Shown here: in pieces, positions 268-9,920 of the stretch
Position numbering within the stretch: position 1 is the stretch's first letter
How the letters are laid out: every line of letters begins with the position of its first letter
NCBI RefSeq assembly: GCF_000143415.4
Contig: NW_003314271.1
Span: 1,394,141-1,406,586, forward strand
Direction: 5' to 3'
DNA from: Selaginella moellendorffii
Taxonomy: Eukaryota; Plantae; Lycopodiophyta
DNA: 12,446 nucleotides
Made by a program: the position numbers and the translations under genes
Notes under the pieces: generated by a model
What the model was told of the DNA's origin: nothing
Seen by the model: the letters and a program-made list of their open reading frames with translations, nothing else
Database searches by the model: none

Positions 268-492
268 CATATATATACATATATATGTGTGTGTGTATAT
301 GTCTATATGTATATGTATATGTATGTGTATATATATAGAATAAAAAAAATTATATAAACTTAATGATTTTTGTACTTATCCAGCAATTACTATCTTATAA
401 GATGGTTTATGAGGGTTTATAGATAATTCTAAACTCACCATGAGCTCAAAGTGGTTTGAAATTCTTCCAGAGCAGGATCAGTGGATTGTAGA
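39..492. repeat. Inverted repeat with 95-bp arms (39-133 and 398-492) enclosing the TA microsatellite
   Basis: The reverse complement of 39-133 matches 398-492 with 4 mismatches by hand alignment and no gaps. Confidence 0.95.
138..337. repeat. Compound microsatellite: perfect (TA)n at 138-209, then degenerate TACA/TA/TG/TATG units
   Basis: Directly visible in the sequence. Confidence 0.99.
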
Positions 493-1325
493 AATATCAC
501 CAAGTCTTCCAGCTTTGAGCGGGCAAGTGTTTCCCTGAAGAGGTGCTTTATCTTCAAGGATGTGAAATCCAGCAAATATCAACTGCTGCTTGACGAAGTA
601 GACGAGGAATTCCACCGTACCAATCGTAGTACAAGTCAGTTGCTTTGATGCGTGCATCCAACTGATCTGCCTCGTTCAGAAGTGCCAGCTGTGGAGACGA
701 CTGTTTCGAATACATGATGCACCGGCAGTCACTCGGCTCGCTACTCCCAGCTTCTTTCAGCAGTCTATCAGCTTCTTCCCGCATTTCCTTGCTCTCAAGC
801 TTCCACAGGCCTAGCAACGCCTCAAACTCGTCCTTATCCCAAGGGTGAACGAAGAACCCCTACTGGCTTCACGCTCTTGATGCTGCTACCAATACCCTGC
901 TGCCCAGAGGATCTCCACTCTCAATTTTCTGGTCAATGAGGTATTCCTCCAATCGACTCAAGGGGTACTCCGTCTTCTCATGGATGGATACCTGGCCTTC
1001 GGACGTGAATTCCCAGATAAGGTTCCCAGATTGGAAGACGACGACGAAGCTGGTGTTCCTAATGGTCTTCTGAATGCCGAACCGGATGAGGAAGTACCAG
1101 AGAAATGCCGACTTTCCAACGCCAGGATTCCCGTTGAGGCGCCCTAACCAATCCATAGACACTGCAGCTTCTATGGCCGAGTAGAGATCATTGAAATCCT
1201 TGCGCACGTACAGCCTTGTAATGAGGTCTTCTCAGGGCTTGATATTTCGCAGGCACACTCAAATCTATGAACTTGCCAGCGGCGTATAAGCACCCCTCCC
1301 CACCCCCGGGTTTCTATCCTAAAGC
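435..1325 (-). pseudogene. Inverted, truncated and frameshifted paralog of the adjacent CR-NTPase gene (covers the NTPase region only)
   Basis: Minus-strand ORFs 869-1207 (GNPGVGKSAFLWYFL) and 554-817 (YYDWYGGIPRLL) are near-identical to the 1461-2744 ORF. A further frame (about 578-468) reads [37 protein letters not shown] versus YLLDFASSKIKYLFTETLVRTKQEDFRTLVQSTDPEL. Deletions relative to the intact gene are about 17, 5, 9, 19, 11 and 157 bp (the last corresponds to about 2341-2497). No PHD, REase or Rho_N part is present. Confidence 0.92.
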
Positions 1326-1460
1326 GTTCATCCCTTTGAGCCAGAATATTTTACGTATATCTGGCGGCTCCATCCAACGGCCCAAATTCTCGGGTAAAAA
1401 AGCGAAACGTGCTTAATAAATGAAAGGAAAACATGGAACCTAGATCCAATTAAGGGTCGA

Positions 1461-3753
1461 ATGGGGTGCCGGAGTCGGAGTCGGAGTCCAGCGACGATCG
1501 ATGGTAGGAAGCGTTTGCGAACTGATGAGAAGTTTAGCGAAACCGGGGCGGCGCTTAGCGCGTGGTGGGGAGGGGTGCTCAACCAACAGCCGGAAGTATA
1601 CGCCGCTGGCAAGTTCATAGATTTGAGTGTGCCTGCGAAATATCGAACCCTGAGAGGACCTCGAGGCATTACAAGGCTGTACGTGCGCAAGGATTTCGAT
1701 GATCTCTACTCGGCCATAGAAGCTGCAGTGTCTATGGATTGGTTAGGGCTCCTCAACGGGAATCCTGGCGTCGGAAAGTCGGCATTCCTCTGGTACTTCC
1801 TCATCCGGTTCGGCATTGAGATGACCATTGAGAACACCAGCTTCGTCGTCGTCTACCAGTCCGCGGACTTTATCTGGGAATTCACGTCCTTAGGCCAGGT
1901 ATCCATCCATGAGAAGACGGATTACCCCTTGAGTCGATTGCAGCGATGTGTGGTTCACCTCATCGACCAGAAAATTGAGAGTGGAGATCCTCTGGGCAAA
2001 AGGATATTGGTAGCAGCATCCCCCGGTCGTAGAAACATCAAGAGCGCGAAGCCAATAGGGGTCAAAAGCAAGTTCTTCGTTCACCCCTGGGATAAGGACG
2101 AGTTTGAGGCGTTGCTAGGCCTGTGGGAGCTTGAGAGCAAGGAAATGCGGGAAGAAGCTGATAGACTGCTGAAGACGAGCGAGCCGAGTGACCGCCGGTG
2201 GAAGACGTATTCGGAAGAGTGGTCTCCACGGGTGGCTCTTCTGGATGAGGCAGATCGGTTGGATGCACGCATCAAAGCAGCTGACTTGTACTACGACTGG
2301 TACGGTGGGATTCCTCGTCTACTTCGTGACGCAGCGGTTGGCGATCTGGATGACCAAGCCTGTGAGAGGAATGTTCAGACCAGTCTCTGCAATACGGACT
2401 TGCCAAAAGTCTATCGGGCTATCCTTTCCGGGGCGACGTCTGACGACATATCGTGGTTGCTGCTTCACTTCAAGCGGCCTCTTGTCAAGGGTGCCAGATA
2501 CTTGCTGGATTTTGCATCCTCCAAGATTAAGTATCTCTTCACAGAAACGCTCGTCAGAACGAAACAGGAAGACTTTAGGACACTTGTACAGTCCACTGAT
2601 CCCGAGCTTGGTGCTCTACGGGGATATGTCTTTGAGCAGGAAGTTGTCCGGCTAGTGCTAGACAGCAATTTCGCTGCCGTCACCTTGGTGAGTGGACTGG
2701 TTTTATGTTTCCCTCCCTTTCATCACAAGTGTTTTGCAGATTGATAACAAGCACTGTAGTCGGTGCCAAGCGCGCGTCGTGGAAGAAGGAGCAAATCGTC
2801 GGTTGATTGTTTGTAGACAATGCCGAAAATGGTACCATCAGGAGTGTGCTCGTTGTCCACTACCTGTTCCTAAATTGTGGAACTGTCAATCTTGCGAAGG
2901 AGAGACAATCCATGAAGGCATAGGCACTGGCGGTCTGAGGCTAAGGTATTACAACGGTGACTTGAAAACTGCGCTCCTGGCTGCAGGTAAGGTGTGAGAT
3001 TTTCTGCTTACAATATTCGCATTCCTTCCCATTTGCTGCAGGTCGCAATGCTAAAGACTTTGTGTGGAGGCCAATAAATAAAAGCAACGCTGCTTTCGAT
3101 TTTGCAATCCCCCCTCGGGTTCTTGGCCAAGCCACAGTTGCCAGCGAGCACCCGGTGCCACGGGAGGCCGTGGAGGAAGGTGTGGCTGCTCTGGACGCAT
3201 GGAACAACGAGTACAACAAGGACCTCATGGATCCCCGGCAGCGGTACGTATTGTTTTCTACAGGCAACTCTTCAATCACTCATTGATTCATTTTAGGGAG
3301 TATATCTTGGCGTTCTACTTAGCTCGAGGCAACTTCGAACGTTTCGGGTACCAGAGCTACCGGGACAAGCATCGGCATGTTTGCAACAAAGCCGTAAAAG
3401 GTTGTAAATCGTTCGTTTTAAGCGTCACACTTACTTTTGAGTGTGTTACAGGAATTATCCAAGTCAAGATTTTGATCGAAACCTACGAGTTGCTTCAGTT
3501 AGCACATCCAGTTGCGGGCTCCGTGGATAAATTGATCGACCTTGAGTACCAGGAGCAGTATGACCTCCATAAAATGACGGTTCGGGAACTCAAGGATTTG
3601 GCGAAGTCTTGGGGTCTTAAAGGCTATTCCTCCCTCAAGAAGGATGCATTGATCGAGGCATTAAATGCTTGGGAGGAGCCACAAGTGCTTGAAAGCCGAG
3701 AGTACGAGAGCAAGTCGTACCAAGAAATGTATGGAGATAGAGTTGTCGTTTGA
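1461..3753 (+). CDS. Spliced gene encoding a Crinkler/RHS (CR)-type P-loop NTPase + restriction-endonuclease-fold protein with an inserted PHD finger and a C-terminal Rho_N/HeH-like domain. Exons 1461-2687, 2740-2986, 3042-3243, 3297-3753, with a probable additional in-frame intron at 3401-3451. About 710 aa, or 693 aa if that intron is removed.
   Basis: Three GT-AG introns of 52, 55 and 53 bp (GTGAGT..TGCAG phase 0, GTAAGG..TGCAG phase 1, GTACGT..TTTAG phase 2) join ORFs 1461, 2692, 3062 and 3199 in frame with no stops. The motif order is typical of CR proteins: LYVR, GNPGVGKS, HLID, AASP, PW-x3-E, GGIPR, RGYVFE, P-x4-N-x3-D, QATV-x3-H, F-x2-F-x2-Q. Confidence 0.85.
1677..2325 (+). other. 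CR-type (STAND/AAA+-related) P-loop NTPase domain
   Basis: LYVRKDF, Walker A GNPGVGKS (1758-1781), Walker B-like VVHLID, ILVAASP, FFVHPWDKDE and the terminal WYGGIPR (GxP-R) motif. Confidence 0.85.
2619..3480 (+). other. CR-associated restriction-endonuclease-fold (PD-(D/E)xK-like) domain, interrupted by the PHD finger
   Basis: Helix RGYVFE (2619-2636), then WRPINKSNAAFDF (Asp at 3098), GQATVASEH (Gln 3128, His 3149), LAFYLARGNFERFGYQSY and IIQVKILI. This matches the G-x2-FE...P-x-N-x3-D...Q-x-T-x4-H pattern I recall for Crinkler/RHS C-terminal nucleases. Confidence 0.75.
2755..2895 (+). other. PHD-type zinc finger (C4HC3)
   Basis: CSRC-x15-CRQC-x4-HQEC-x10-WNCQSC. It has all eight ligands and the diagnostic Trp two residues before the last Cys pair. 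Confidence 0.9.
3565..3669 (+). other. Rho termination factor N-terminal (Rho_N) / HeH-like nucleic-acid-binding module
   Basis: LHKMTVRELKDLAKSWGLKGYSSLKKDALIEAL fits L-x2-MTV-x-ELK-x2-AK-x2-G-(I/L)-x-GYS-x-(L/M)-KK-x2-LI. Confidence 0.88.
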
Positions 3754-3782
3754 TGAAACCTGAATCTTAAGAATGTTTGGCT

Positions 3783-4200
3783 TATCATTTCAGTCATTGT
3801 CTCTGCATCTTGGATATGCCCAGACTGGGAATATGCCTGGATCACATAAATGCGATCCTGGCGATGTCCGTCCACTCTGGGAATCTTGCTGCCGCCAAAG
3901 AGATCCCGTCTTGGAATTCTCTCTGGACTTGGAACGCTGGAGAAATCTGAGCGCATCGTCGCTATGTTCGTTCTCGACGCAGGCACTGATCATGATGTTC
4001 CACGAGGTGTTAAACACTTGCTTGGCGACATCCACACGGCCACACTTCCCATGCATTTGAACTTGGCATCGCGATCGCGGGTTCTAACGCCGCTGCTAGC
4101 GATCCACCTTCCGGCTGGAACCCCTGGCTATCCCTTGATCGATGGATCTCTTTTCCTCTAACGAGATCTCTCGCGGCACAGCACTCCCGCAGAGCTGGGA
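3783..4200 (-). pseudogene. Degenerate PLS-class pentatricopeptide repeat (PPR) gene fragment
   Basis: PPR-type motifs are split across three separate ORFs: ALRECCAARDLVRGKEIH (4195-4142), MHGKCGRVDVAKQVFNTSWNIMISACVENEHSDDALRFL (from 4056) and VIQAYSQSGHIQDA (about 3846-3804). There is no continuous ORF. Confidence 0.8.
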
Positions 4201-4290: not shown

Positions 4291-5937
4291 TCACTGCCAG
4301 CTCCTCGTCTTCGTTCTCGCGGCGACGATCCAACACAAGCAAGCTCCAATAGCGCTGGCGGCGCTGAGAGCCGCGAATCCTCTTCGAAAGCAATGACCCC
4401 CATGGCACACCGATTCCCGGCCAGCCTCGCGATCATAGAAGTAGCCCACCACCCTGGACGAGAGAAGATAATGGCCGACTGGATTCCCCACGAGGAGAGC
4501 GTTGAACACCACGCCCAGCCTCCTCTCTCCAAACATCTCGCAGGCTATGGCGGCGGTGAGCCCCCAGTTCGCTCCATCGCTCGCCGCTCCCAGCACCGCC
4601 GCGAAGATCGCCGCTCCAGGGACCGGGACCGCCGCCAGCGCCGTGCCGATCGAGTTGGAGGCCATCCCCAGCGCCAGAAACGTGGATTTGGGAGTGCCAA
4701 ATCGCTTCAGGCAGTAGTCCGCGGCCAGGCCGGCGGCGATCCTCGCGAAGCAGCTACTCACGCAGAAGAGCGACACGAAAACGGAGCCTATCTTCTGCGA
4801 GTAGCCGAGAGAGATCGCGAGTTGGGTGAGATTGGTGGGGACTGCATTGGCGGCGCCGAATCCAAACACCAGCGCGACGAACAGTAGCCAGAAATCCACG
4901 CTGGTGGCGACCTGGGCAAGCGTGTGATCATCGCCAAGTCTAGGTGGTGGTGATGTTCTTCCTGTCTCGTGATCTTTGGTCGCCCCTGTTTCTAGCAGAG
5001 CCTCTGTTCTTCCAGCTGGTTCCTTCTCGTCGTGATCTAGCAGGGCCTCCCTCGCAGATCCTGCTACCTTGCGATCTAGCACTCCCCTTCGCGATATCAG
5101 CTGTTCCTCACGATCCAGCAAAGTTGCATTCCAATCTTTGTCTTGGAATCCCGCCACCAACGCGATCACAGCCAGTAGCAGCAGCAAGAGCACGATGATC
5201 GAGCAGACAATCACCTGTGTACCACGAGTGAATCGCATGAACACCTCAAGAACACTCACGACCAGGAGCCACGCTGCTAGCGCCACCAGGCTTCCGGACA
5301 TGCCGTACATGCCACCGTACGGCACCGGCGGAGACCCCACCGTACGAGAGAGGGGCCTCGCCGCGAGAGCCAATGGAAGCATGAGAGGGATCATCCACGA
5401 GAGCATCAACGGGAGCCCATCGCCGCTACCACCGCCGCCACTAATCGCGTAGAACGCCTGGAGGAAGATCGATCCGCCCAACACATGGTAGCCCTTGACC
5501 AATCCCAGCACCGCGCCCGTGTCGCGGCCGAAATTCCTGGCGCTCGCCAGCACCACCGGCGTCTGGACCGACGCCTGGGAGATCCCAATCAGGAGCTCGT
5601 AGAGACAGAGCTGCCACACCGCAGCGCCATGGATCCGGTGCGTGATGGTGAGCCAGATCATGAGGAGCGCCACGCTCTGGCCGGCAGCTCCGGCGGCGAG
5701 CAGCAGCCATGGTGGGACTAGGGCGTACAGAAGTCCTGGGATGATCCCGAGCGCGCTGCCGACGCCCGAGAAGGTGGTGATTGCCGTCAGGGTCTTTTGA
5801 TCCAGCGCCATGGCGATCTTCATCGCCTGGGAGTAGCCGCTAAAAGTGTAGATCGAGGAATTCAACACCATGATCCAGCAGCTGGCCGCCAGTGCGATCC
5901 ATCGGCTGTTCCTGAGATCCCATTCCATTGCTTTCAT
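4291..5937 (-). CDS. Nodulin-like / NFD4-like major facilitator superfamily transporter (548 aa, apparently intronless)
   Basis: Long GC-rich ORF with many hydrophobic segments and family motifs: SRWIALAASCWI, YTFSGYSQAMK, RNF-x3-G-x-V-x-GL-x-KGY, LGDDHTLAQ-x4-DFWLLF, ELFG-like EMFG, NPVG-x-YLLS-x4-G-x2-YD-x-EA, C-x-G-x2-CF. Confidence 0.93.
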   Translation of the reverse strand: MKAMEWDLRNSRWIALAASCWIMVLNSSIYTFSGYSQAMKIAMALDQKTLTAITTFSGVGSALGIIPGLLYALVPPWLLLAAGAAGQSVALLMIWLTITHRIHGAAVWQLCLYELLIGISQASVQTPVVLASARNFGRDTGAVLGLVKGYHVLGGSIFLQAFYAISGGGGSGDGLPLMLSWMIPLMLPLALAARPLSRTVGSPPVPYGGMYGMSGSLVALAAWLLVVSVLEVFMRFTRGTQVIVCSIIVLLLLLLAVIALVAGFQDKDWNATLLDREEQLISRRGVLDRKVAGSAREALLDHDEKEPAGRTEALLETGATKDHETGRTSPPPRLGDDHTLAQVATSVDFWLLFVALVFGFGAANAVPTNLTQLAISLGYSQKIGSVFVSLFCVSSCFARIAAGLAADYCLKRFGTPKSTFLALGMASNSIGTALAAVPVPGAAIFAAVLGAASDGANWGLTAAIACEMFGERRLGVVFNALLVGNPVGHYLLSSRVVGYFYDREAGRESVCHGGHCFRRGFAALSAASAIGACLCWIVAARTKTRSWQ

Positions 5938-6070: not shown

Positions 6071-6605
6071 TATTAATTCACTTACCAACTTTGTCTTTTC
6101 ATTCGTCTTGAAAATACTTGATACTTTATAAATCTTATTCCCGATTTAGAGATTTATTACCCCTATGAATGGCATCTTTGCCATTGTGCCATTACAGTTG
6201 GACTTGGTCTGTCCAAGTGCTCCACATGTCCATTTTCATTACAAACACCCACATTAATATATTAATTTATTACACTAATGTTATATTTATTTACTTTTGT
6301 CTCTTTGGTAAACTAATGCCATCTATACTGCAGTCCTATCTCCTAAAAATTAAGTCACCAATGAGTGATCATCTTATGATCACACCTTAGCACCTTTGGC
6401 CTTAATATAATAAGTTGATATATTAATAGTACCTTTAAGTGTTTATAATGGGAATGGACATGTGAAGCACTTGGACCAAATGTAATAATAGAGTAGCAAA
6501 GAGGCCATTCATGGGTTTAATAAGTCCTTAAGTTGGGAATATAATTTATAGAGGTTGAGAGTGAAACTCTTCCAAGTGGTCAAAGGTGTGGTTAAATAAT
6601 TAATA
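6071..6605. mobile_element. Non-coding MITE / fold-back-like element with long imperfect terminal inverted repeats
   Basis: 6127-6248 aligns with the reverse complement of 6439-6550 (for example GTCCAAGTGCTCCACATGTCCATT versus AATGGACATGTGAAGCACTTGGAC, and ATGAATGGCATCTTTGC versus GCAAAGAGGCCATTCAT). Weaker similarity extends inward to about 6270/6410 and outward to about 6071/6605. AT-rich context. The outer boundaries and TSD are uncertain. Confidence 0.7.
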
Positions 6606-6930
6606 TAAAATGGAAAAATTAATCACTAAATGAATTTTTTTGTTTGTAACTCCTTGATATAAATTATTATTAATAAGTATTATTTGATATTTATTATATC
6701 TCCATATTAGGCATTTCCACATTTTATCCTTCATTTTAATTAAATAGTTTTTATCTTTAATAAAACTATCCCTCATATTATCCATGTTGCAACCTTTCCT
6801 ATATTTTCTGTATAATACTTATTATATATCACTGAACATTTGAAGTGTTTGATACATTGGTAATAAATCTTGTTTAGAAATGTAAGACCAAATTTTAAGT
6901 TATAAAATATCTTTTATAAATGATTCAAGT

Positions 6931-7105
6931 TGTGAATGTGTAGAATATAGAAAGAGAATACAAAAATGTGCCTATTAATTAACCCAAAAATCCTAACTTA
7001 TATACAAAAACAAATGGTTTAGATTGAAACCAATTTAACAACTACCAAAATCCCACTTCGCTAATATTAGTATATAATATCGTATCCGTAAACTTAGACC
7101 TCATA
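6931..7105 (-). repeat. 3' LTR (175 bp)
   Basis: Aligns end to end with 11648-11819, with about 30 substitutions and 2 small indels by hand count. Begins TGTGA on the + strand. Confidence 0.9.
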
Positions 7106-7119
7106 TCATCCCCTCATTC
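7106..7119 (-). other. Polypurine tract (PPT)
   Basis: Minus strand reads GAATGAGGGGATGA immediately 5' of the 3' LTR. Confidence 0.75.
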
Positions 7120-7229
7120 GGAATGATAGAAGACCATTAGAGTTCTTTCATGGATGGGCCGGGATCTGGAGGAACATCATGAGGAGGCATCAGTGGATTT
7201 GTAAGTGGTGCCAGTTGTTCTTAATCCCT

Positions 7230-8340
7230 TTGTATGAAACGTTTTAACGATTGCACATGCATAATTTCTGAAAGATCAATCTGTTGGATGTCATGCCAAA
7301 CCTCATAAACTTGCGGTCCCACTTGCTACAACACTTGATATGGTCTTTTCCATTGAACAAAGAGCCTCTTAGATAAATTATATACCGTAAGATTAGGAAA
7401 ATGGACTAATACCAAGTTATCCACTTTGTACTCTATAGGTGAACGATGATGGGAATTGTAATGCCATTGTTGTCCCACTTATATGCGGCCCAAGTGTTTC
7501 GTGGACTCTGCTTAAACAAGTGGAAGAATGCTCGTCAAATATTAATCTCACGACCTAGCATCGGCAGCCCATGGTAATCATGAAGGTAAACCTAATTCTT
7601 TTTTAAGTATTGGATTATGAACATATAAGAGTTTATATGGTGAAGCACTAACAGAACTCTACACCCTTATAACATACACATACTAAAGAAATGGCAAATA
7701 ACCATCCCAATTTGAATATTTTGCGATCATCCCTTTGAAAGTTTGAACAAGCCAATCCACTAAACTGTCTAATTGTGGATGATAAACACTTACGACGAAA
7801 GTGTGGCATATCCCCAAATAAAAATGTAAAACGTGAAATGCCTCAGTTATAAATGCAGAACCATTATCTAAAAGAATCCACTCTAGACAAAAATGCTGGA
7901 ACACCACTTGATTGAGGAGGAAATAACCAACAATAGTGGCAAATACACTAGTGGAAGCATTAACTTTCGCCCAACAAGTCAAATAGTCAAAAGCAATAAT
8001 GACATACTCATTGCTAGCAGTCAACTGTGGAAAATGCCCCATTAGATCAAATATCACCAACTAAAATGGACGGGAAACTACAATTGATTTTAACCATCCC
8101 TCCATCACAAGGGGGAGTATTATAAGCTTGGCACCAAATGAAACTATATATATATCGGATAATATCATGTTGCATTTTCGGCCAATAGAAAGATTTACAT
8201 AGCTTCATGGTCATATAGCAATGGCTTATATCCCTACCTAGAATAGGAGAATAATGGTAGGTATGGAGAAAGAGTGGAATAAAGATCGAAAGCACCACCA
8301 GCCATAAATGATCATTAGAATTTGTCCCCACAAAATAAAG
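7230..8340 (-). pseudogene. Gypsy integrase remnant (HHCC zinc finger, rve core, GPY/F-like C-terminus)
   Basis: FYWPKMQHDIIRYIYSFIWCQ, FDLMGHFP, DYLTCWA, ILLDNGSAF, YHPQLDSLVDW (degenerate YHPQxxGxxER), and KLSKRLFVQWKRPYQV near 7330-7380. Confidence 0.88.
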
Positions 8341-8659
8341 AAGACCGTCCTCAAGGAAATATTAAGAATGTAAATGTTAGAATGGCAAGTCATTAGTTGG
8401 TGATGCAAGATTCTCAAACTTATCTCAAATATTTCGAATTCATGGCTCAATCTTTTGAACCTTGTGAACCTTGTCAAGAGAAGGTAAATCTTATTTTGCA
8501 TCTTGTGGACATTGAATGTTAAGTATAGCAACCGCCGACGGCATGGAATCCTTGTTTAAAAAATCCATAGATACAAGAGCAACAGGCTCATCAGAAATAT
8601 GCAAAGAGAGCGAAGAAGGAAGAGGAGCTCAAGAAAGGGCACCAACATTAGCCTAGAAC

Positions 8660-9920
8660 TCCCTGGGTGATAAAAAACATCAAAATCATATATTTGAAGT
8701 TTCAAAACTCACCGAGCAATACGACCAACCAAATTCTTCCACTTCAATAATGAAGTAACTATAGCATGATCACCTTTTAATAACATTTGAGAACTATGTA
8801 AATATGCATGAAGTTTCTCAAAACCCTAACCTACTGCTAAACACTCCCCTATCGTGGTGTAATTCACCTCCTTTAGTTGTAAAGTATAGGTAATATATGC
8901 AATAGAATGGCGCTAACCATGCACACTTGGGCTCTCTTGCATGAATACACCTCCAAGACTGATGTCAGAAGTATCCACACACAAAATGAAAAGTCAAGTG
9001 TAGTCAGGATATGTCAAAATTGGTGAAGTCGTCAATAGGTCTTTGAGATCTGTAAACACACACTCATAGTCTATAGACCAGATGAAAGATGACCTTTATA
9101 ACTTCAGCAATGCTTGCAATAGTGCAGTGCAATCAGAAAGATGATCATCAAAACGATTGAGATATTACACCTTGCTCAAGAAACCCTACACATCATTCAC
9201 ACACTTTAGAGTAGAAAACTTTAAAACAGCCACAAGTTTATCAAAATCAACTTGCAAACCCTCACAAGAAATATGGTATTCAAGATAAATCGTATCTTTG
9301 GACCCAAACACACACTTCAACCACTTCAACTTTAAACCAACTTTTTGAAGTCGATCTAACACCTTATGAACATCACAGATATATTCCTTCCACGTCCCCT
9401 CTGAGTGATTCAATATATCATTAATGAAGTCAGCAGTCACCTTTAATATATTGCAAAAAACTTTGTCCATCATCTGCTGGAAAGTTGTTGGAGCATTGTT
9501 CAAACTAAATGGTATCACCAAGAACTTATACAAACCAAATAATTAGTTTTACGAATATCATCTTTGGCCATCAATACTTTCTAATAACGAAAAACAAGAT
9601 CTAACTTAGTGAACCAATGACTTCTCCCCAGACAATTTAAGAGATTAGTAGTGTGAGGAAGAGAGTATATATCTGGGATCATCACTTTGTTTAATGGACA
9701 ATAGTCGATGAAAAAAAAATACTCCTATTAAATTTTGTCACAAGATGAGGTTTATATGCTCAAGGACTGCATAACTTTTGAATAGCACTCTTTTCCAACA
9801 TCTCTTTGATGTTTGCATGTAAAATTTTGATCTTTTTGGGTGACCGACAACAAATAGGAACCTTGATTAGGTGAGTATCCTCAGTTGGAATAGGATGATA
9901 TGTTGCAATCTTAGCCTCGA
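8660..9920 (-). pseudogene. Gypsy reverse transcriptase and RNase H remnant
   Basis: HPIPTEDTHLIK...EMLEKSAIQKLCSP, YKFLVIPFSLNNAPTTFQQMMD, ADFINDIL (degenerate YxDD), VLDRLQKVGLKLKWLKCVF, and RNase H FILCVDTSDISLGGVF near 8945-8992. Confidence 0.88.

Follow-up and report, generated by a model that had tools for sequence, protein, structure and literature searches.

The window analysed here, a stretch of 12,446 nucleotides from Selaginella moellendorffii, carries on its + strand a gene whose spliced coding sequence runs through 1461-2687, 2740-2986, 3042-3243, 3297-3400 and 3452-3753, and on its - strand (473..1290) a decayed, partial copy of the NTPase half of this gene, SELMODRAFT_409318 (P0005), placed head-to-head with it. 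The translation of the first exon (1461..2687, residues 1-409), which is covered by RNA, is 100% identical to SELMODRAFT_409319, so that the protein is indeed plant-encoded, as a first-pass annotation of the window had stated. In public databases SELMODRAFT_409319 is annotated as an uncharacterised 'PHD-type domain-containing protein'; its host is a 3.09-Mb Selaginella scaffold on which plant genes adjoin it. A full-text literature search found the locus tags of the gene nowhere mentioned, and Selaginella and Crinkler together only in an unrelated review.

Splice evidence was taken from stranded raw RNA-seq reads (two runs) and from transcript contigs (two other data sets), for a total of three studies. 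Four GT..AG introns are seen in all four RNA data sets, in RNA of the + strand. Specifically, intron 1 (52 nt, 2688..2739) is documented by spliced reads in both raw-read runs and by contigs of two studies, intron 2 (55 nt, 2987..3041) and intron 3 (53 nt, 3244..3296) by RNA reads and contigs, and intron 4 (51 nt, 3401..3451) by spliced reads (14 in one raw-read run, 5 in the other) and by two contigs, in agreement with the public model. The junctions foreseen by the first-pass annotation, 2687/2740, 2986/3042 and 3243/3297, are matched exactly by the RNA-seq of the three studies. The same annotation had proposed three introns and an intact protein of about 700 residues: the protein is intact, with 693 amino acids, 79 kDa and no internal stop, while the fourth intron, which lies in frame and leaves the open reading frame unbroken, had been missed. 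One transcript contig follows the gene with zero mismatch from position 1463 on.

Exon 1 contains a basic NLS-like start, a P-loop NTPase, a helical insert and a winged-helix region, together with the opening helix and strand of a REase-fold domain. Exon 2 (2740..2986; Pfam, public model and RNA) encodes the PHD finger and the REase-fold strands that follow it, and exon 3 (3042..3243; RNA and family alignment) the core strands of the fold with their conserved motif. Exon 4 (3297..3400; public model and RNA) leads to exon 5 (3452..3753, stop codon included; contigs and translation), which holds the last REase-fold strand, a linker and the Rho_N tail. Here the public model introduces a fifth splice, which removes Rho_N and which we rejected: no such joint occurs in the reads, and two RNA contigs cross the site, unspliced from 3451 to past 3753. 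In other words, the mature product keeps the Rho_N tail, in frame in the transcript as read from the RNA contigs, and the public model of SELMODRAFT_409319 wrongly drops it.

Domains of the encoded protein

The first 30 residues of the protein are basic (pI 10.8); in the predicted structure, residues 1-16 are disordered (pLDDT <50) and are followed by a single helix. In this disordered basic N-terminus the sequence RKRLR (residues 16-20, 1506..1520) is a candidate nuclear localisation signal. The NTPase is recognised by a Walker A motif read from the sequence, GNPGVGKS (residues 100-107, 1758..1781), and by a Walker B aspartate, D169 in VVHLID (1965..1967), assigned by motif position and family alignment. 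For the latter, an exhaustive phmmer search gave 46 relatives, and the alignment comprises 39 sequences; G105 and K106 of Walker A are nearly invariant in it, as are G283 and R286 of GGIPR, which together with SP and YMPxW belongs to the family motifs present alongside Walker A and B. The NTPase is followed by an insert of about 45 residues that resembles a coiled coil, and from the conserved GGIPR extends a region of helices and a winged helix (about residues 282-370, 2304..2570), with predicted helices (285-323), a beta-hairpin (335-351) and further helices (354-377). The helical/HTH linker expected of Crinkler/RHS (CR) proteins is therefore present, in the predicted structure, between NTPase and REase fold; the exon-1 part of this prediction has a pLDDT mostly of 85-97.

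A Pfam scan gave no match for residues 1-409, and a profile search of PDB sequences returned generic P-loop matches alone (E >0.05), so that no solved CR relative was found. At the level of shape, Foldseek related the NTPase part to modules of NLR, Apaf-1, CED-4, ORC and RFC proteins (E 5e-6 to 1e-3), and the alignments with NLR, Apaf-1, CED-4 and ORC, of about 300-490 columns, are far longer than the NTPase core of about 140 residues. With respect to the STAND NTPases (NLR NACHT/NB-ARC, Apaf-1, CED-4, Avs), the resemblance covers the NTPase and helical domains and concerns modules of NLR, Apaf-1 and CED-4, with a low TM of 0.16-0.22; the Selaginella protein is devoid of LRR, WD and TPR sensor repeats, and the similarity gives no evidence of membership.

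The C-terminal domain is predicted with a pLDDT of 82. When it was compared exhaustively with the PDB by VIA-align, the full-domain matches were REase folds, namely N.BspD6I, McrC, BstEII, LlaBIII, SdaI, SgrAI, FokI, NgoMIV, Cfr10I, Can1/Can2 and NucC, at Z values of about 4-5.3, which fall in a range that VIA-align itself labels common; the one exception was the unclassified Upx (9wuf). Foldseek of the same domain against the PDB matched PHD fingers alone and no REase. The Foldseek check proposed by the first-pass annotation consequently recovered the STAND-like NTPase modules and the PHD finger but not the REase fold, which VIA-align alone found. Among structure clusters, the domain matches some that contain a Crinkler header and others from Euglenozoa, basidiomycetes and chytrids (TM 0.58-0.64, rmsd 2.4-3.2 A), and these predicted-structure matches place it in the CR-type REase fold. 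In particular, the matches with the nuclease domains of McrC and LlaBIII (Z 4.7-4.9), from McrBC and Type ISP respectively, provide together with the STAND NTPases a working analogy, that of a nucleotide-switched nuclease.

The nuclease motif reads E392...D511...Q521-x-T523, and the canonical lysine of PD-(D/E)xK is absent from it. D511 (3098..3100), the nearly invariant aspartate of the REase fold (D140 of the C-terminal-domain alignment, conserved in at least 90%), corresponds to the codon that had been put forward as the catalytic-Asp candidate, and is one of four nearly invariant residues of the domain. In the family alignment Q521-A-T523 (3128..3136) stands at the canonical (D/E)xK place with no lysine; T523 is itself nearly invariant (T152 of the C-terminal-domain alignment, conserved in at least 90% of sequences), and one Selaginella paralogue has V-A-T at the Q-x-T position. 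The earlier description of the protein as a nuclease is thus borne out for the fold but not for the motif. The domain may be a nuclease by virtue of its fold assignment and, because the catalytic lysine is replaced (QxT), it may either cut DNA or merely bind it.

The PHD finger, of C4HC3 type (residues 415-461, 2755..2895), occupies a surface loop of the REase-fold domain and separates its first helix and strand from the remainder. It is found on exon 2 by PF00628 (29.2 bits; cut-off 24), and its zinc-ligand pattern is readable as C-x2-C-x15-C-x2-C-x4-H-x2-C-x12-C-x2-C. PHD fingers of the PDB match the predicted structure at Z 5-6.1 (rmsd 1.7-2.5 A), and phmmer matches include PHF1, PHF13, WSTF and ALFIN-LIKE 3. 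The tryptophan of the KWYH motif is present, and a histidine, not a tyrosine, precedes the first cysteine; the finger may bind histone H3 tails. The Rho_N tail (HeH/SAP-like, residues 631-664, 3562..3663) scores 36.4 bits with PF07498 (cut-off 24.9), and the same stretch gives weak matches with SAP and ARMET_C; it lies outside the predicted whole structure, which was built on the public model with its mis-annotated C-terminus. Both modules are therefore real by their Pfam scores, as initially reported, and the order basic N-terminus, NTPase, REase fold with PHD, Rho_N is one on which motifs, Pfam and predicted structure agree. PHD and Rho_N occur in several Selaginella copies and in no relative recovered outside Selaginella; in the family alignment, the hornwort and metagenome relatives have no PHD finger.

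The replaced lysine raises the question of whether the REase-fold domain is catalytically dead and the protein a chromatin- and DNA-binding NTPase switch or scaffold, in other words a domesticated regulator. A nearly invariant threonine in place of the (D/E)xK lysine would suit such a protein, as would the V-A-T of the Selaginella paralogue and the presence of PHD and HeH, which are binding and not catalytic modules. However, conservation of E392, D511, T523 and H528 is strong even among very distant relatives, which indicates that an active site or ligand site has been preserved. Moreover, REase-fold enzymes with a displaced or substituted lysine exist, and the group of Cfr10I, NgoMIV and SgrAI, enzymes with atypical active sites, is found among the structural matches; R501 or H528 could provide the missing function. 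On balance, we regard a dead domain as a serious but somewhat unlikely explanation.

Kinship with Crinkler and RHS proteins and history of the locus

That the ATPase-helical/wHTH-REase-fold body belongs with the CR proteins, as the first-pass annotation had recognised, is supported by three kinds of evidence from models. First, the trypanosomatid RHS family (PF07999, RHSP) gives sub-threshold matches of its P-loop model in 9 of the 39 aligned relatives, the best reaching 23.7 bits where the cut-off is 25, and in a relative outside the alignment, P0027, at 24.2 bits; no relative reached the cut-off, and the protein itself has no RHSP match. Second, in language-model space its neighbours come from oomycete, basidiomycete and trypanosomatid RHS clusters (0.96-0.98). 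Third, the best shape matches of the whole predicted structure are clusters designated as Crinkler-header, RHS or 'CRN family', with 297-381 residues aligned across 1-651; for the RHS cluster, 381 residues align over the full length with a TM of 0.46.

With the Crinkler (CRN) effectors of oomycetes, chytrids and Rhizophagus the protein shares a body of three parts, a P-loop NTPase, a helical/winged-helix region and a REase fold. These effectors are pathogen proteins and bear a signal peptide and a trafficking header (Ubl/LFLAK or alpha-helical), whereas the Selaginella protein is the product of an endogenous plant gene and has neither: the Crinkler header PF20147 does not match, and neither a Crinkler-type header nor a secretion domain was found, so that a defining CR feature is missing. 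The hornwort sister P0048 shows a weak match to PF20147 (E 0.002, 19.3 bits against 24.6), which suggests that the header was lost in Selaginella. The PHD finger inside the REase fold, the Rho_N tail and the coiled-coil-like insert are additions with respect to Crinkler effectors. As for RHS proteins, the Selaginella protein lacks the RHS_N domain, and to our knowledge RHS proteins have neither PHD nor Rho_N. In the phylogenetic tree the Selaginella copies form one clade (100/96), sister to the hornwort homologue (97/94) and apart from all metagenome relatives; word-indexed protein searches, with the family profile and with the C-terminal region, retrieved Selaginella proteins or the query only and are uninformative on taxonomic spread.

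CR proteins of land plants were found by Zhang et al. 2016, according to the review PMC5289972, which also mentions a land-plant CR protein with an N-terminal Myb-like HTH. The view that the four-part architecture had not been described before was therefore too strong, the class having been reported in land plants (PMC5289972) and the gene itself being annotated already. By description, the Myb-like-HTH protein is likewise endogenous and joined to a module that binds nucleic acid or chromatin in the nucleus, with the same proposed unsecreted, intracellular logic; it differs from the protein of Selaginella, a lycophyte protein sister to a hornwort one, in its lineage and in the module, an N-terminal HTH instead of a PHD within the REase fold and a C-terminal Rho_N. 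All considered, we are highly confident of the identity and architecture: an intact, spliced and transcribed Selaginella gene for a header-less CR-class protein with PHD and Rho_N.

The copy at 473..1290 is tied to the gene by inverted repeats I1-I3 and I10, which are 75-98% complementary, the stretch 473-2602 being a quasi-palindrome, and the head-to-head arrangement is found also at a second locus. The block shared by the two loci takes in a neighbouring Nodulin-like gene, in a segmental duplication with host genes, and over about 770 nt the loci hardly differ, suggesting gene conversion. The paralogous locus carries a premature stop, and the partner NTPase copies have decayed through frameshifts, deletions and a stop codon; the genome holds many annotated fragments of the family beside several intact copies.

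A multi-copy family rich in fragments, with its head-to-head layout repeated at a second locus and a near-identical tract suggestive of conversion, might be taken for a selfish element, an 'epigenetic parasite', or for a toxin/antidote-like pair formed with the NTPase-only copy. A precedent for header loss with chromatin targeting exists in AACRNL of teleosts, a header-degenerated Crinkler-like protein that is multi-copy and acts on chromatin, favouring its own expression and copy-number growth through chromatin manipulation (PMC12957317). Like the Selaginella protein, it is CR-derived, belongs to a free-living eukaryote, has lost the host-targeting header and is multi-copy. Yet AACRNL has no NTPase-REase, no PHD and no Rho_N; its effector domain is a mono-ADP-ribosyltransferase, and hAT and mariner elements accompany its spread (PMC12957317), while both the ADP-ribosyltransferase domain and flanking hAT elements are absent here. 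Furthermore, the Selaginella copies spread by segmental duplication with host neighbours and not as a discrete unit, and the partner copies are decayed, so that a selfish origin of this kind appears quite improbable.

Still less credible is the idea that the gene serves a still mobile but unrecognised DNA transposon, as its transposase (a possibility entertained in the first-pass annotation) or as an accessory protein. The existence of several genomic copies, a weak match of one paralogue to CxC3 (KDZ-transposase-associated) on its PHD region (E 4e-4, below cut-off) and the proposal of Zhang et al. 2016, as relayed by the review PMC5289972, that prokaryotic transposons gave rise to the CR NTPase+REase module would be in line with it. 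Nevertheless, the window shows no terminal repeats, inverted or direct, on either side of the gene; four spliceosomal introns interrupt it, the Nodulin-like gene was duplicated in the same block, and the paralogue P0007 is flanked by acyl-CoA dehydrogenase, SBDS and SET-domain genes. Without termini, and with the gene duplicated along with its neighbours, we rejected this reading as very unlikely. Finally, although the nearest named families are oomycete, fungal and trypanosomatid, contaminating or recently transferred Crinkler DNA was rejected as extremely unlikely, given the long Selaginella scaffold with adjoining plant genes and the transcription and splicing in Selaginella RNA of several studies, while the clade sister to hornwort, away from metagenome relatives, and the short introns mark a plant gene.

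A possible role at chromatin

The product of SELMODRAFT_409319 is a header-less plant CR protein, probably aimed at chromatin. In the mechanism that we envisage, the basic N-terminus would bring the protein to the nucleus, where the PHD finger would anchor it to histone H3 tails and the HeH tail would hold it to nucleic acid; nucleotide binding or hydrolysis by the STAND/AAA-like NTPase could then switch the nuclease-fold domain, or bring about its assembly, on DNA. This histone-docked, NTP-switched mechanism is proposed tentatively, at somewhat less than even chances, and the whole explanation, which combines the architecture with chromatin targeting, we consider about as probable as its opposite. 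The likely role would be in intragenomic conflict or in defence against invading or repeated DNA, which fits the birth-and-death pattern of the family, with several intact copies and many decayed ones. A bolder possibility, in our opinion unlikely, is that the header-less land-plant CR clade represents a nuclear NLR-like executor of immunity or genome defence, in which the PHD finger would read the histone state of foreign or reactivated DNA such as transposons or viruses, the HeH tail would grip the nucleic acid, and assembly driven by NTP would license cutting or silencing of the chromatin concerned. If true, this would amount to a histone-mark-gated restriction enzyme in a plant.

Crinkler and RHS proteins have been studied as weapons of pathogens, and plants and other free-living eukaryotes also retain them. 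The value of the present case is tempered by the fact that the class is known in land plants and the gene was already annotated, and by the derivation of all functional statements from sequence and structure models. In this context, the Selaginella gene is an expressed and intact plant CR copy that no longer has the delivery header and has acquired two predicted nuclear targeting modules, one of which, the PHD finger, is built into the nuclease-fold domain itself, in an unusual combination of domains. The analysis also corrects the public gene model, with its Rho_N tail restored. Such a copy makes the idea of an endogenous function of CR proteins in conflict or defence testable in a model lycophyte with a small genome.

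Transcript structure and gene product

The gene SELMODRAFT_409319 of Selaginella moellendorffii (window 1461-3753, plus strand) lies on a scaffold of 3.09 Mb. Its public entry, a 'PHD-type domain-containing protein', has 651 aa, and residues 1-409 of this entry are 100% identical to the 409-aa translation of window 1461-2687. The ORF map contains the four separate ORFs described in the first-pass annotation, with canonical splice signals between them. RNA evidence over window 1300-3900, from the raw reads of two stranded RNA-seq runs and from transcript contigs of two further studies, places introns 1 (2688-2739, 52 nt), 2 (2987-3041, 55 nt) and 3 (3244-3296, 53 nt) exactly at the junctions that had been predicted. 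A fourth intron (3401-3451, 51 nt) had been read through, since it is in frame. All four lie on the plus strand, have GT..AG borders and are supported in 4/4 RNA data sets. First mates map to the minus strand, as for plus-strand RNA in a standard stranded library. Moreover, a 3,094-nt contig spans window 1463-3900 with zero mismatches; therefore, the RNA stems from the gene's own locus and not from its 92%-identical paralogue.

The public model carries an additional splice that swaps the Rho_N tail (window 3540-3753) for 22 unrelated residues. No read or contig supports this joint, because two transcript contigs are unspliced from 3451 to beyond the stop codon and no splice joint beyond the four occurs in the RNA data over window 1300-3900. 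The true C-terminus is the Rho_N domain, and the spliced CDS yields a protein of 693 aa rather than 651 (79 kDa, pI 8.1), equal to the public model through 629 residues and then continuing into Rho_N. In other words, the RNA data correct the public gene model.

Domain architecture, nuclease fold and Crinkler/RHS kinship

Residues 1-409 have no Pfam match. A phmmer search run exhaustively over 1.84 billion representatives returned 46 relatives, namely Selaginella paralogues or fragments, one transcript of the hornwort Nothoceros aenigmaticus (E 3e-20) and proteins from metagenomes or run assemblies. A 39-sequence alignment conserves Walker A (GNPGxGKS), Walker B (hhhhD), SP, YMPxW and GGIPR, and a C-terminal block with, in order, LRGxxFE, FxVRxL, YxRP...D, hFQxT..H and hhFVVP. 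The AlphaFold model of the public-sequence protein (pLDDT 79, pTM 0.67) runs from a P-loop alpha/beta domain through a long helical insert, missing in the non-Selaginella relatives, and a winged-helix-like region of helices and a beta-hairpin to an alpha/beta domain. Foldseek matches of the NTPase to the NACHT/NB-ARC of NLRs, Apaf-1, CED-4, ORC, RFC and RuvB (E 5e-6 to 1e-3, low TM) fit a predicted STAND/AAA-like switch, with no membership of these families implied.

The PHD finger, encoded in exon 2, scores 29.2 bits (Pfam cut-off 24) and Rho_N 36.4 bits (cut-off 24.9); two further HeH folds, SAP and ARMET_C, score slightly below threshold on the Rho_N stretch. Among solved structures, the finger matches PHF1, PHF13, WSTF, PHF23 and ALFIN-LIKE 3 by sequence, and shape matches reach Z 5-6.1 at rmsd 1.7-2.5 Å. 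In the model it sits on a loop of the C-terminal alpha/beta domain and separates the opening helix and strand of the nuclease fold from the remainder; at this position the hornwort and all metagenome relatives align with a short hairpin only.

A restriction-endonuclease (REase) fold was proposed for this domain in the first-pass annotation. Foldseek matches to the PDB included no REase, but an exhaustive VIA-align search returned REase folds in every whole-domain row, save PHD fingers and the recently solved, unclassified Upx (9wuf). These rows (N.BspD6I, R.BspD6I, McrC, BstEII, LlaBIII, SdaI, SgrAI, FokI, NgoMIV, Cfr10I, EcoT38I, Can1/Can2 and NucC) align 108-129 residues at Z 4.0-5.2, modest on VIA-align's own calibration, so that the case derives from the uniformity of the class and not from the strength of any one match. 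E392, R501, D511, Q521-x-T523 and H528 are conserved; D511 corresponds to codon 3098, previously singled out as the catalytic Asp, and the nearly invariant T523 occupies the canonical Lys place. Such conservation in the family alignment argues for a putative functional site, and the absence of the Lys argues against presuming ordinary REase chemistry. Active DNA cleavage is a prediction about evenly balanced.

Concerning kinship, Pfam RHSP (PF07999) matches 9 of the 39 aligned relatives below its 25-bit cut-off (best 23.7 bits), as well as P0027, a relative outside the alignment, at a likewise sub-cut-off 24.2 bits. Residues 29-92 of P0048, one hornwort isoform, give a weak Crinkler-header match (PF20147, E 0.002). 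The language model places residues 60-409 next to clusters from oomycetes, basidiomycetes and Euglenozoa at 0.96-0.98, among them one named 'retrotransposon hot spot protein'. Finally, the best ESM-Atlas shape matches of the whole model are one Crinkler-header cluster from chytrids, one RHS cluster and one 'Crinkler (CRN) family' cluster (297-381 residues aligned, spread over the full length), and the C-terminal domain alone (pLDDT 82) finds Crinkler-header, RHS and CRN clusters at TM 0.58-0.64 and rmsd 2.4-3.2 Å. These four lines, independent of one another, agree, though none is a clean threshold pass, and the protein body is therefore filed with the Crinkler/RHS (CR) class. A review gives NTPase + HTH + REase as the commonest Phytophthora CRN C-terminus (PMC5289972). 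Two of the features that define CR proteins are lacking in the Selaginella protein, which has no header and a non-canonical PD-(D/E)xK motif. Novelty is limited, as the gene is annotated already and PMC5289972, citing Zhang et al. 2016, records CR proteins in land plants; a full-text literature search for the gene's loci returned no mention.

In the proposed mechanism, a basic N-terminus with RKRLR, a candidate NLS, would direct nuclear import, the PHD finger would dock on H3 tails, the HeH tail would anchor to nucleic acid, and the NTPase would gate the nuclease-fold domain on DNA; the role would lie in defending the genome or in intragenomic conflict. The main rival is an identical architecture with a non-catalytic fold. 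For a selfish 'epigenetic parasite' role, AACRNL (PMC12957317) offers a precedent, with little specific support here.

Genomic behaviour of the locus

Directly upstream, the NTPase half of the gene recurs as a decayed, partial copy in head-to-head orientation (SELMODRAFT_409318, 179 aa; 473-1290, minus strand). Its arms are 75-98% complementary to gene positions 1590-2602 (plus), with internal deletions, and the two form a quasi-palindrome of ~2.1 kb. Inverted arms of 98 nt (39-136 and 395-492, 95% complementary) flank a (TA)n/(CATA)n microsatellite and contain ~20 nt of gene-derived sequence from where the decayed copy ends; this structure (39-492) could be foldback or MITE-like. A 47-nt direct repeat occupies 1-47 and 84-130.

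That the protein might be the transposase of a mobile element, as had been suggested, is rejected: no terminal repeats bracket the gene within the window, and L002, a second, paralogous locus on the same scaffold, repeats the entire neighbourhood, including the Nodulin-like transporter gene at 97% identity, which points to segmental duplication and not transposition. The paralogue P0007 neighbours acyl-CoA dehydrogenase, SBDS and SET-domain genes. The several intact copies and many fragments of the family in Selaginella are typical of conflict-related genes and are not evidence of mobility.

The downstream gene copy at L002 has a W332stop and no NTPase half of its own. Nonetheless, window 2987-3752 and L002 ~6370-7140 differ by one base over ~770 nt, introns included, while the flanking parts of exons 1 and 2 differ by 4-7%, which suggests recent gene conversion, into or out of the pseudogene.

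Convergent with the CR gene is an intronless Nodulin-like/NFD4 MFS transporter ORF of 548 aa (4291-5937, minus strand; PF06813, E 9e-39). Since one RNA contig extends from the CR gene ~870 nt past window 3900, the two genes may overlap at their 3' ends. Further on, at ~7300-9600 (minus strand), lies an AT-rich, stop-riddled LTR retrotransposon remnant that retains part of a reverse transcriptase (PF00078, E 6e-9) and, slightly below the cut-off, an integrase zinc-binding H2C2 fragment (E 4e-5).

Family history

A maximum-likelihood tree unites the Selaginella copies in a single clade (100/96) whose sister is the hornwort (97/94); P0008, a paralogue without the PHD finger, is placed within the Selaginella clade. 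Rho_N is carried by the gene product and by the paralogues P0003, P0004 and P0007; it went undetected in P0009 and in the hornwort relative. Given this topology, the simplest history starts from an embryophyte CR lineage, possibly with a Crinkler-type header, followed in the Selaginella line by header loss and PHD finger gain, by Rho_N gain in part of the family only, and by later PHD finger loss, or mis-annotation, in P0008. The hornwort P0048 has ~120 extra N-terminal residues, which carry its weak header match. If that header is real, P0048 would represent a complete header-bearing CR protein in a bryophyte.
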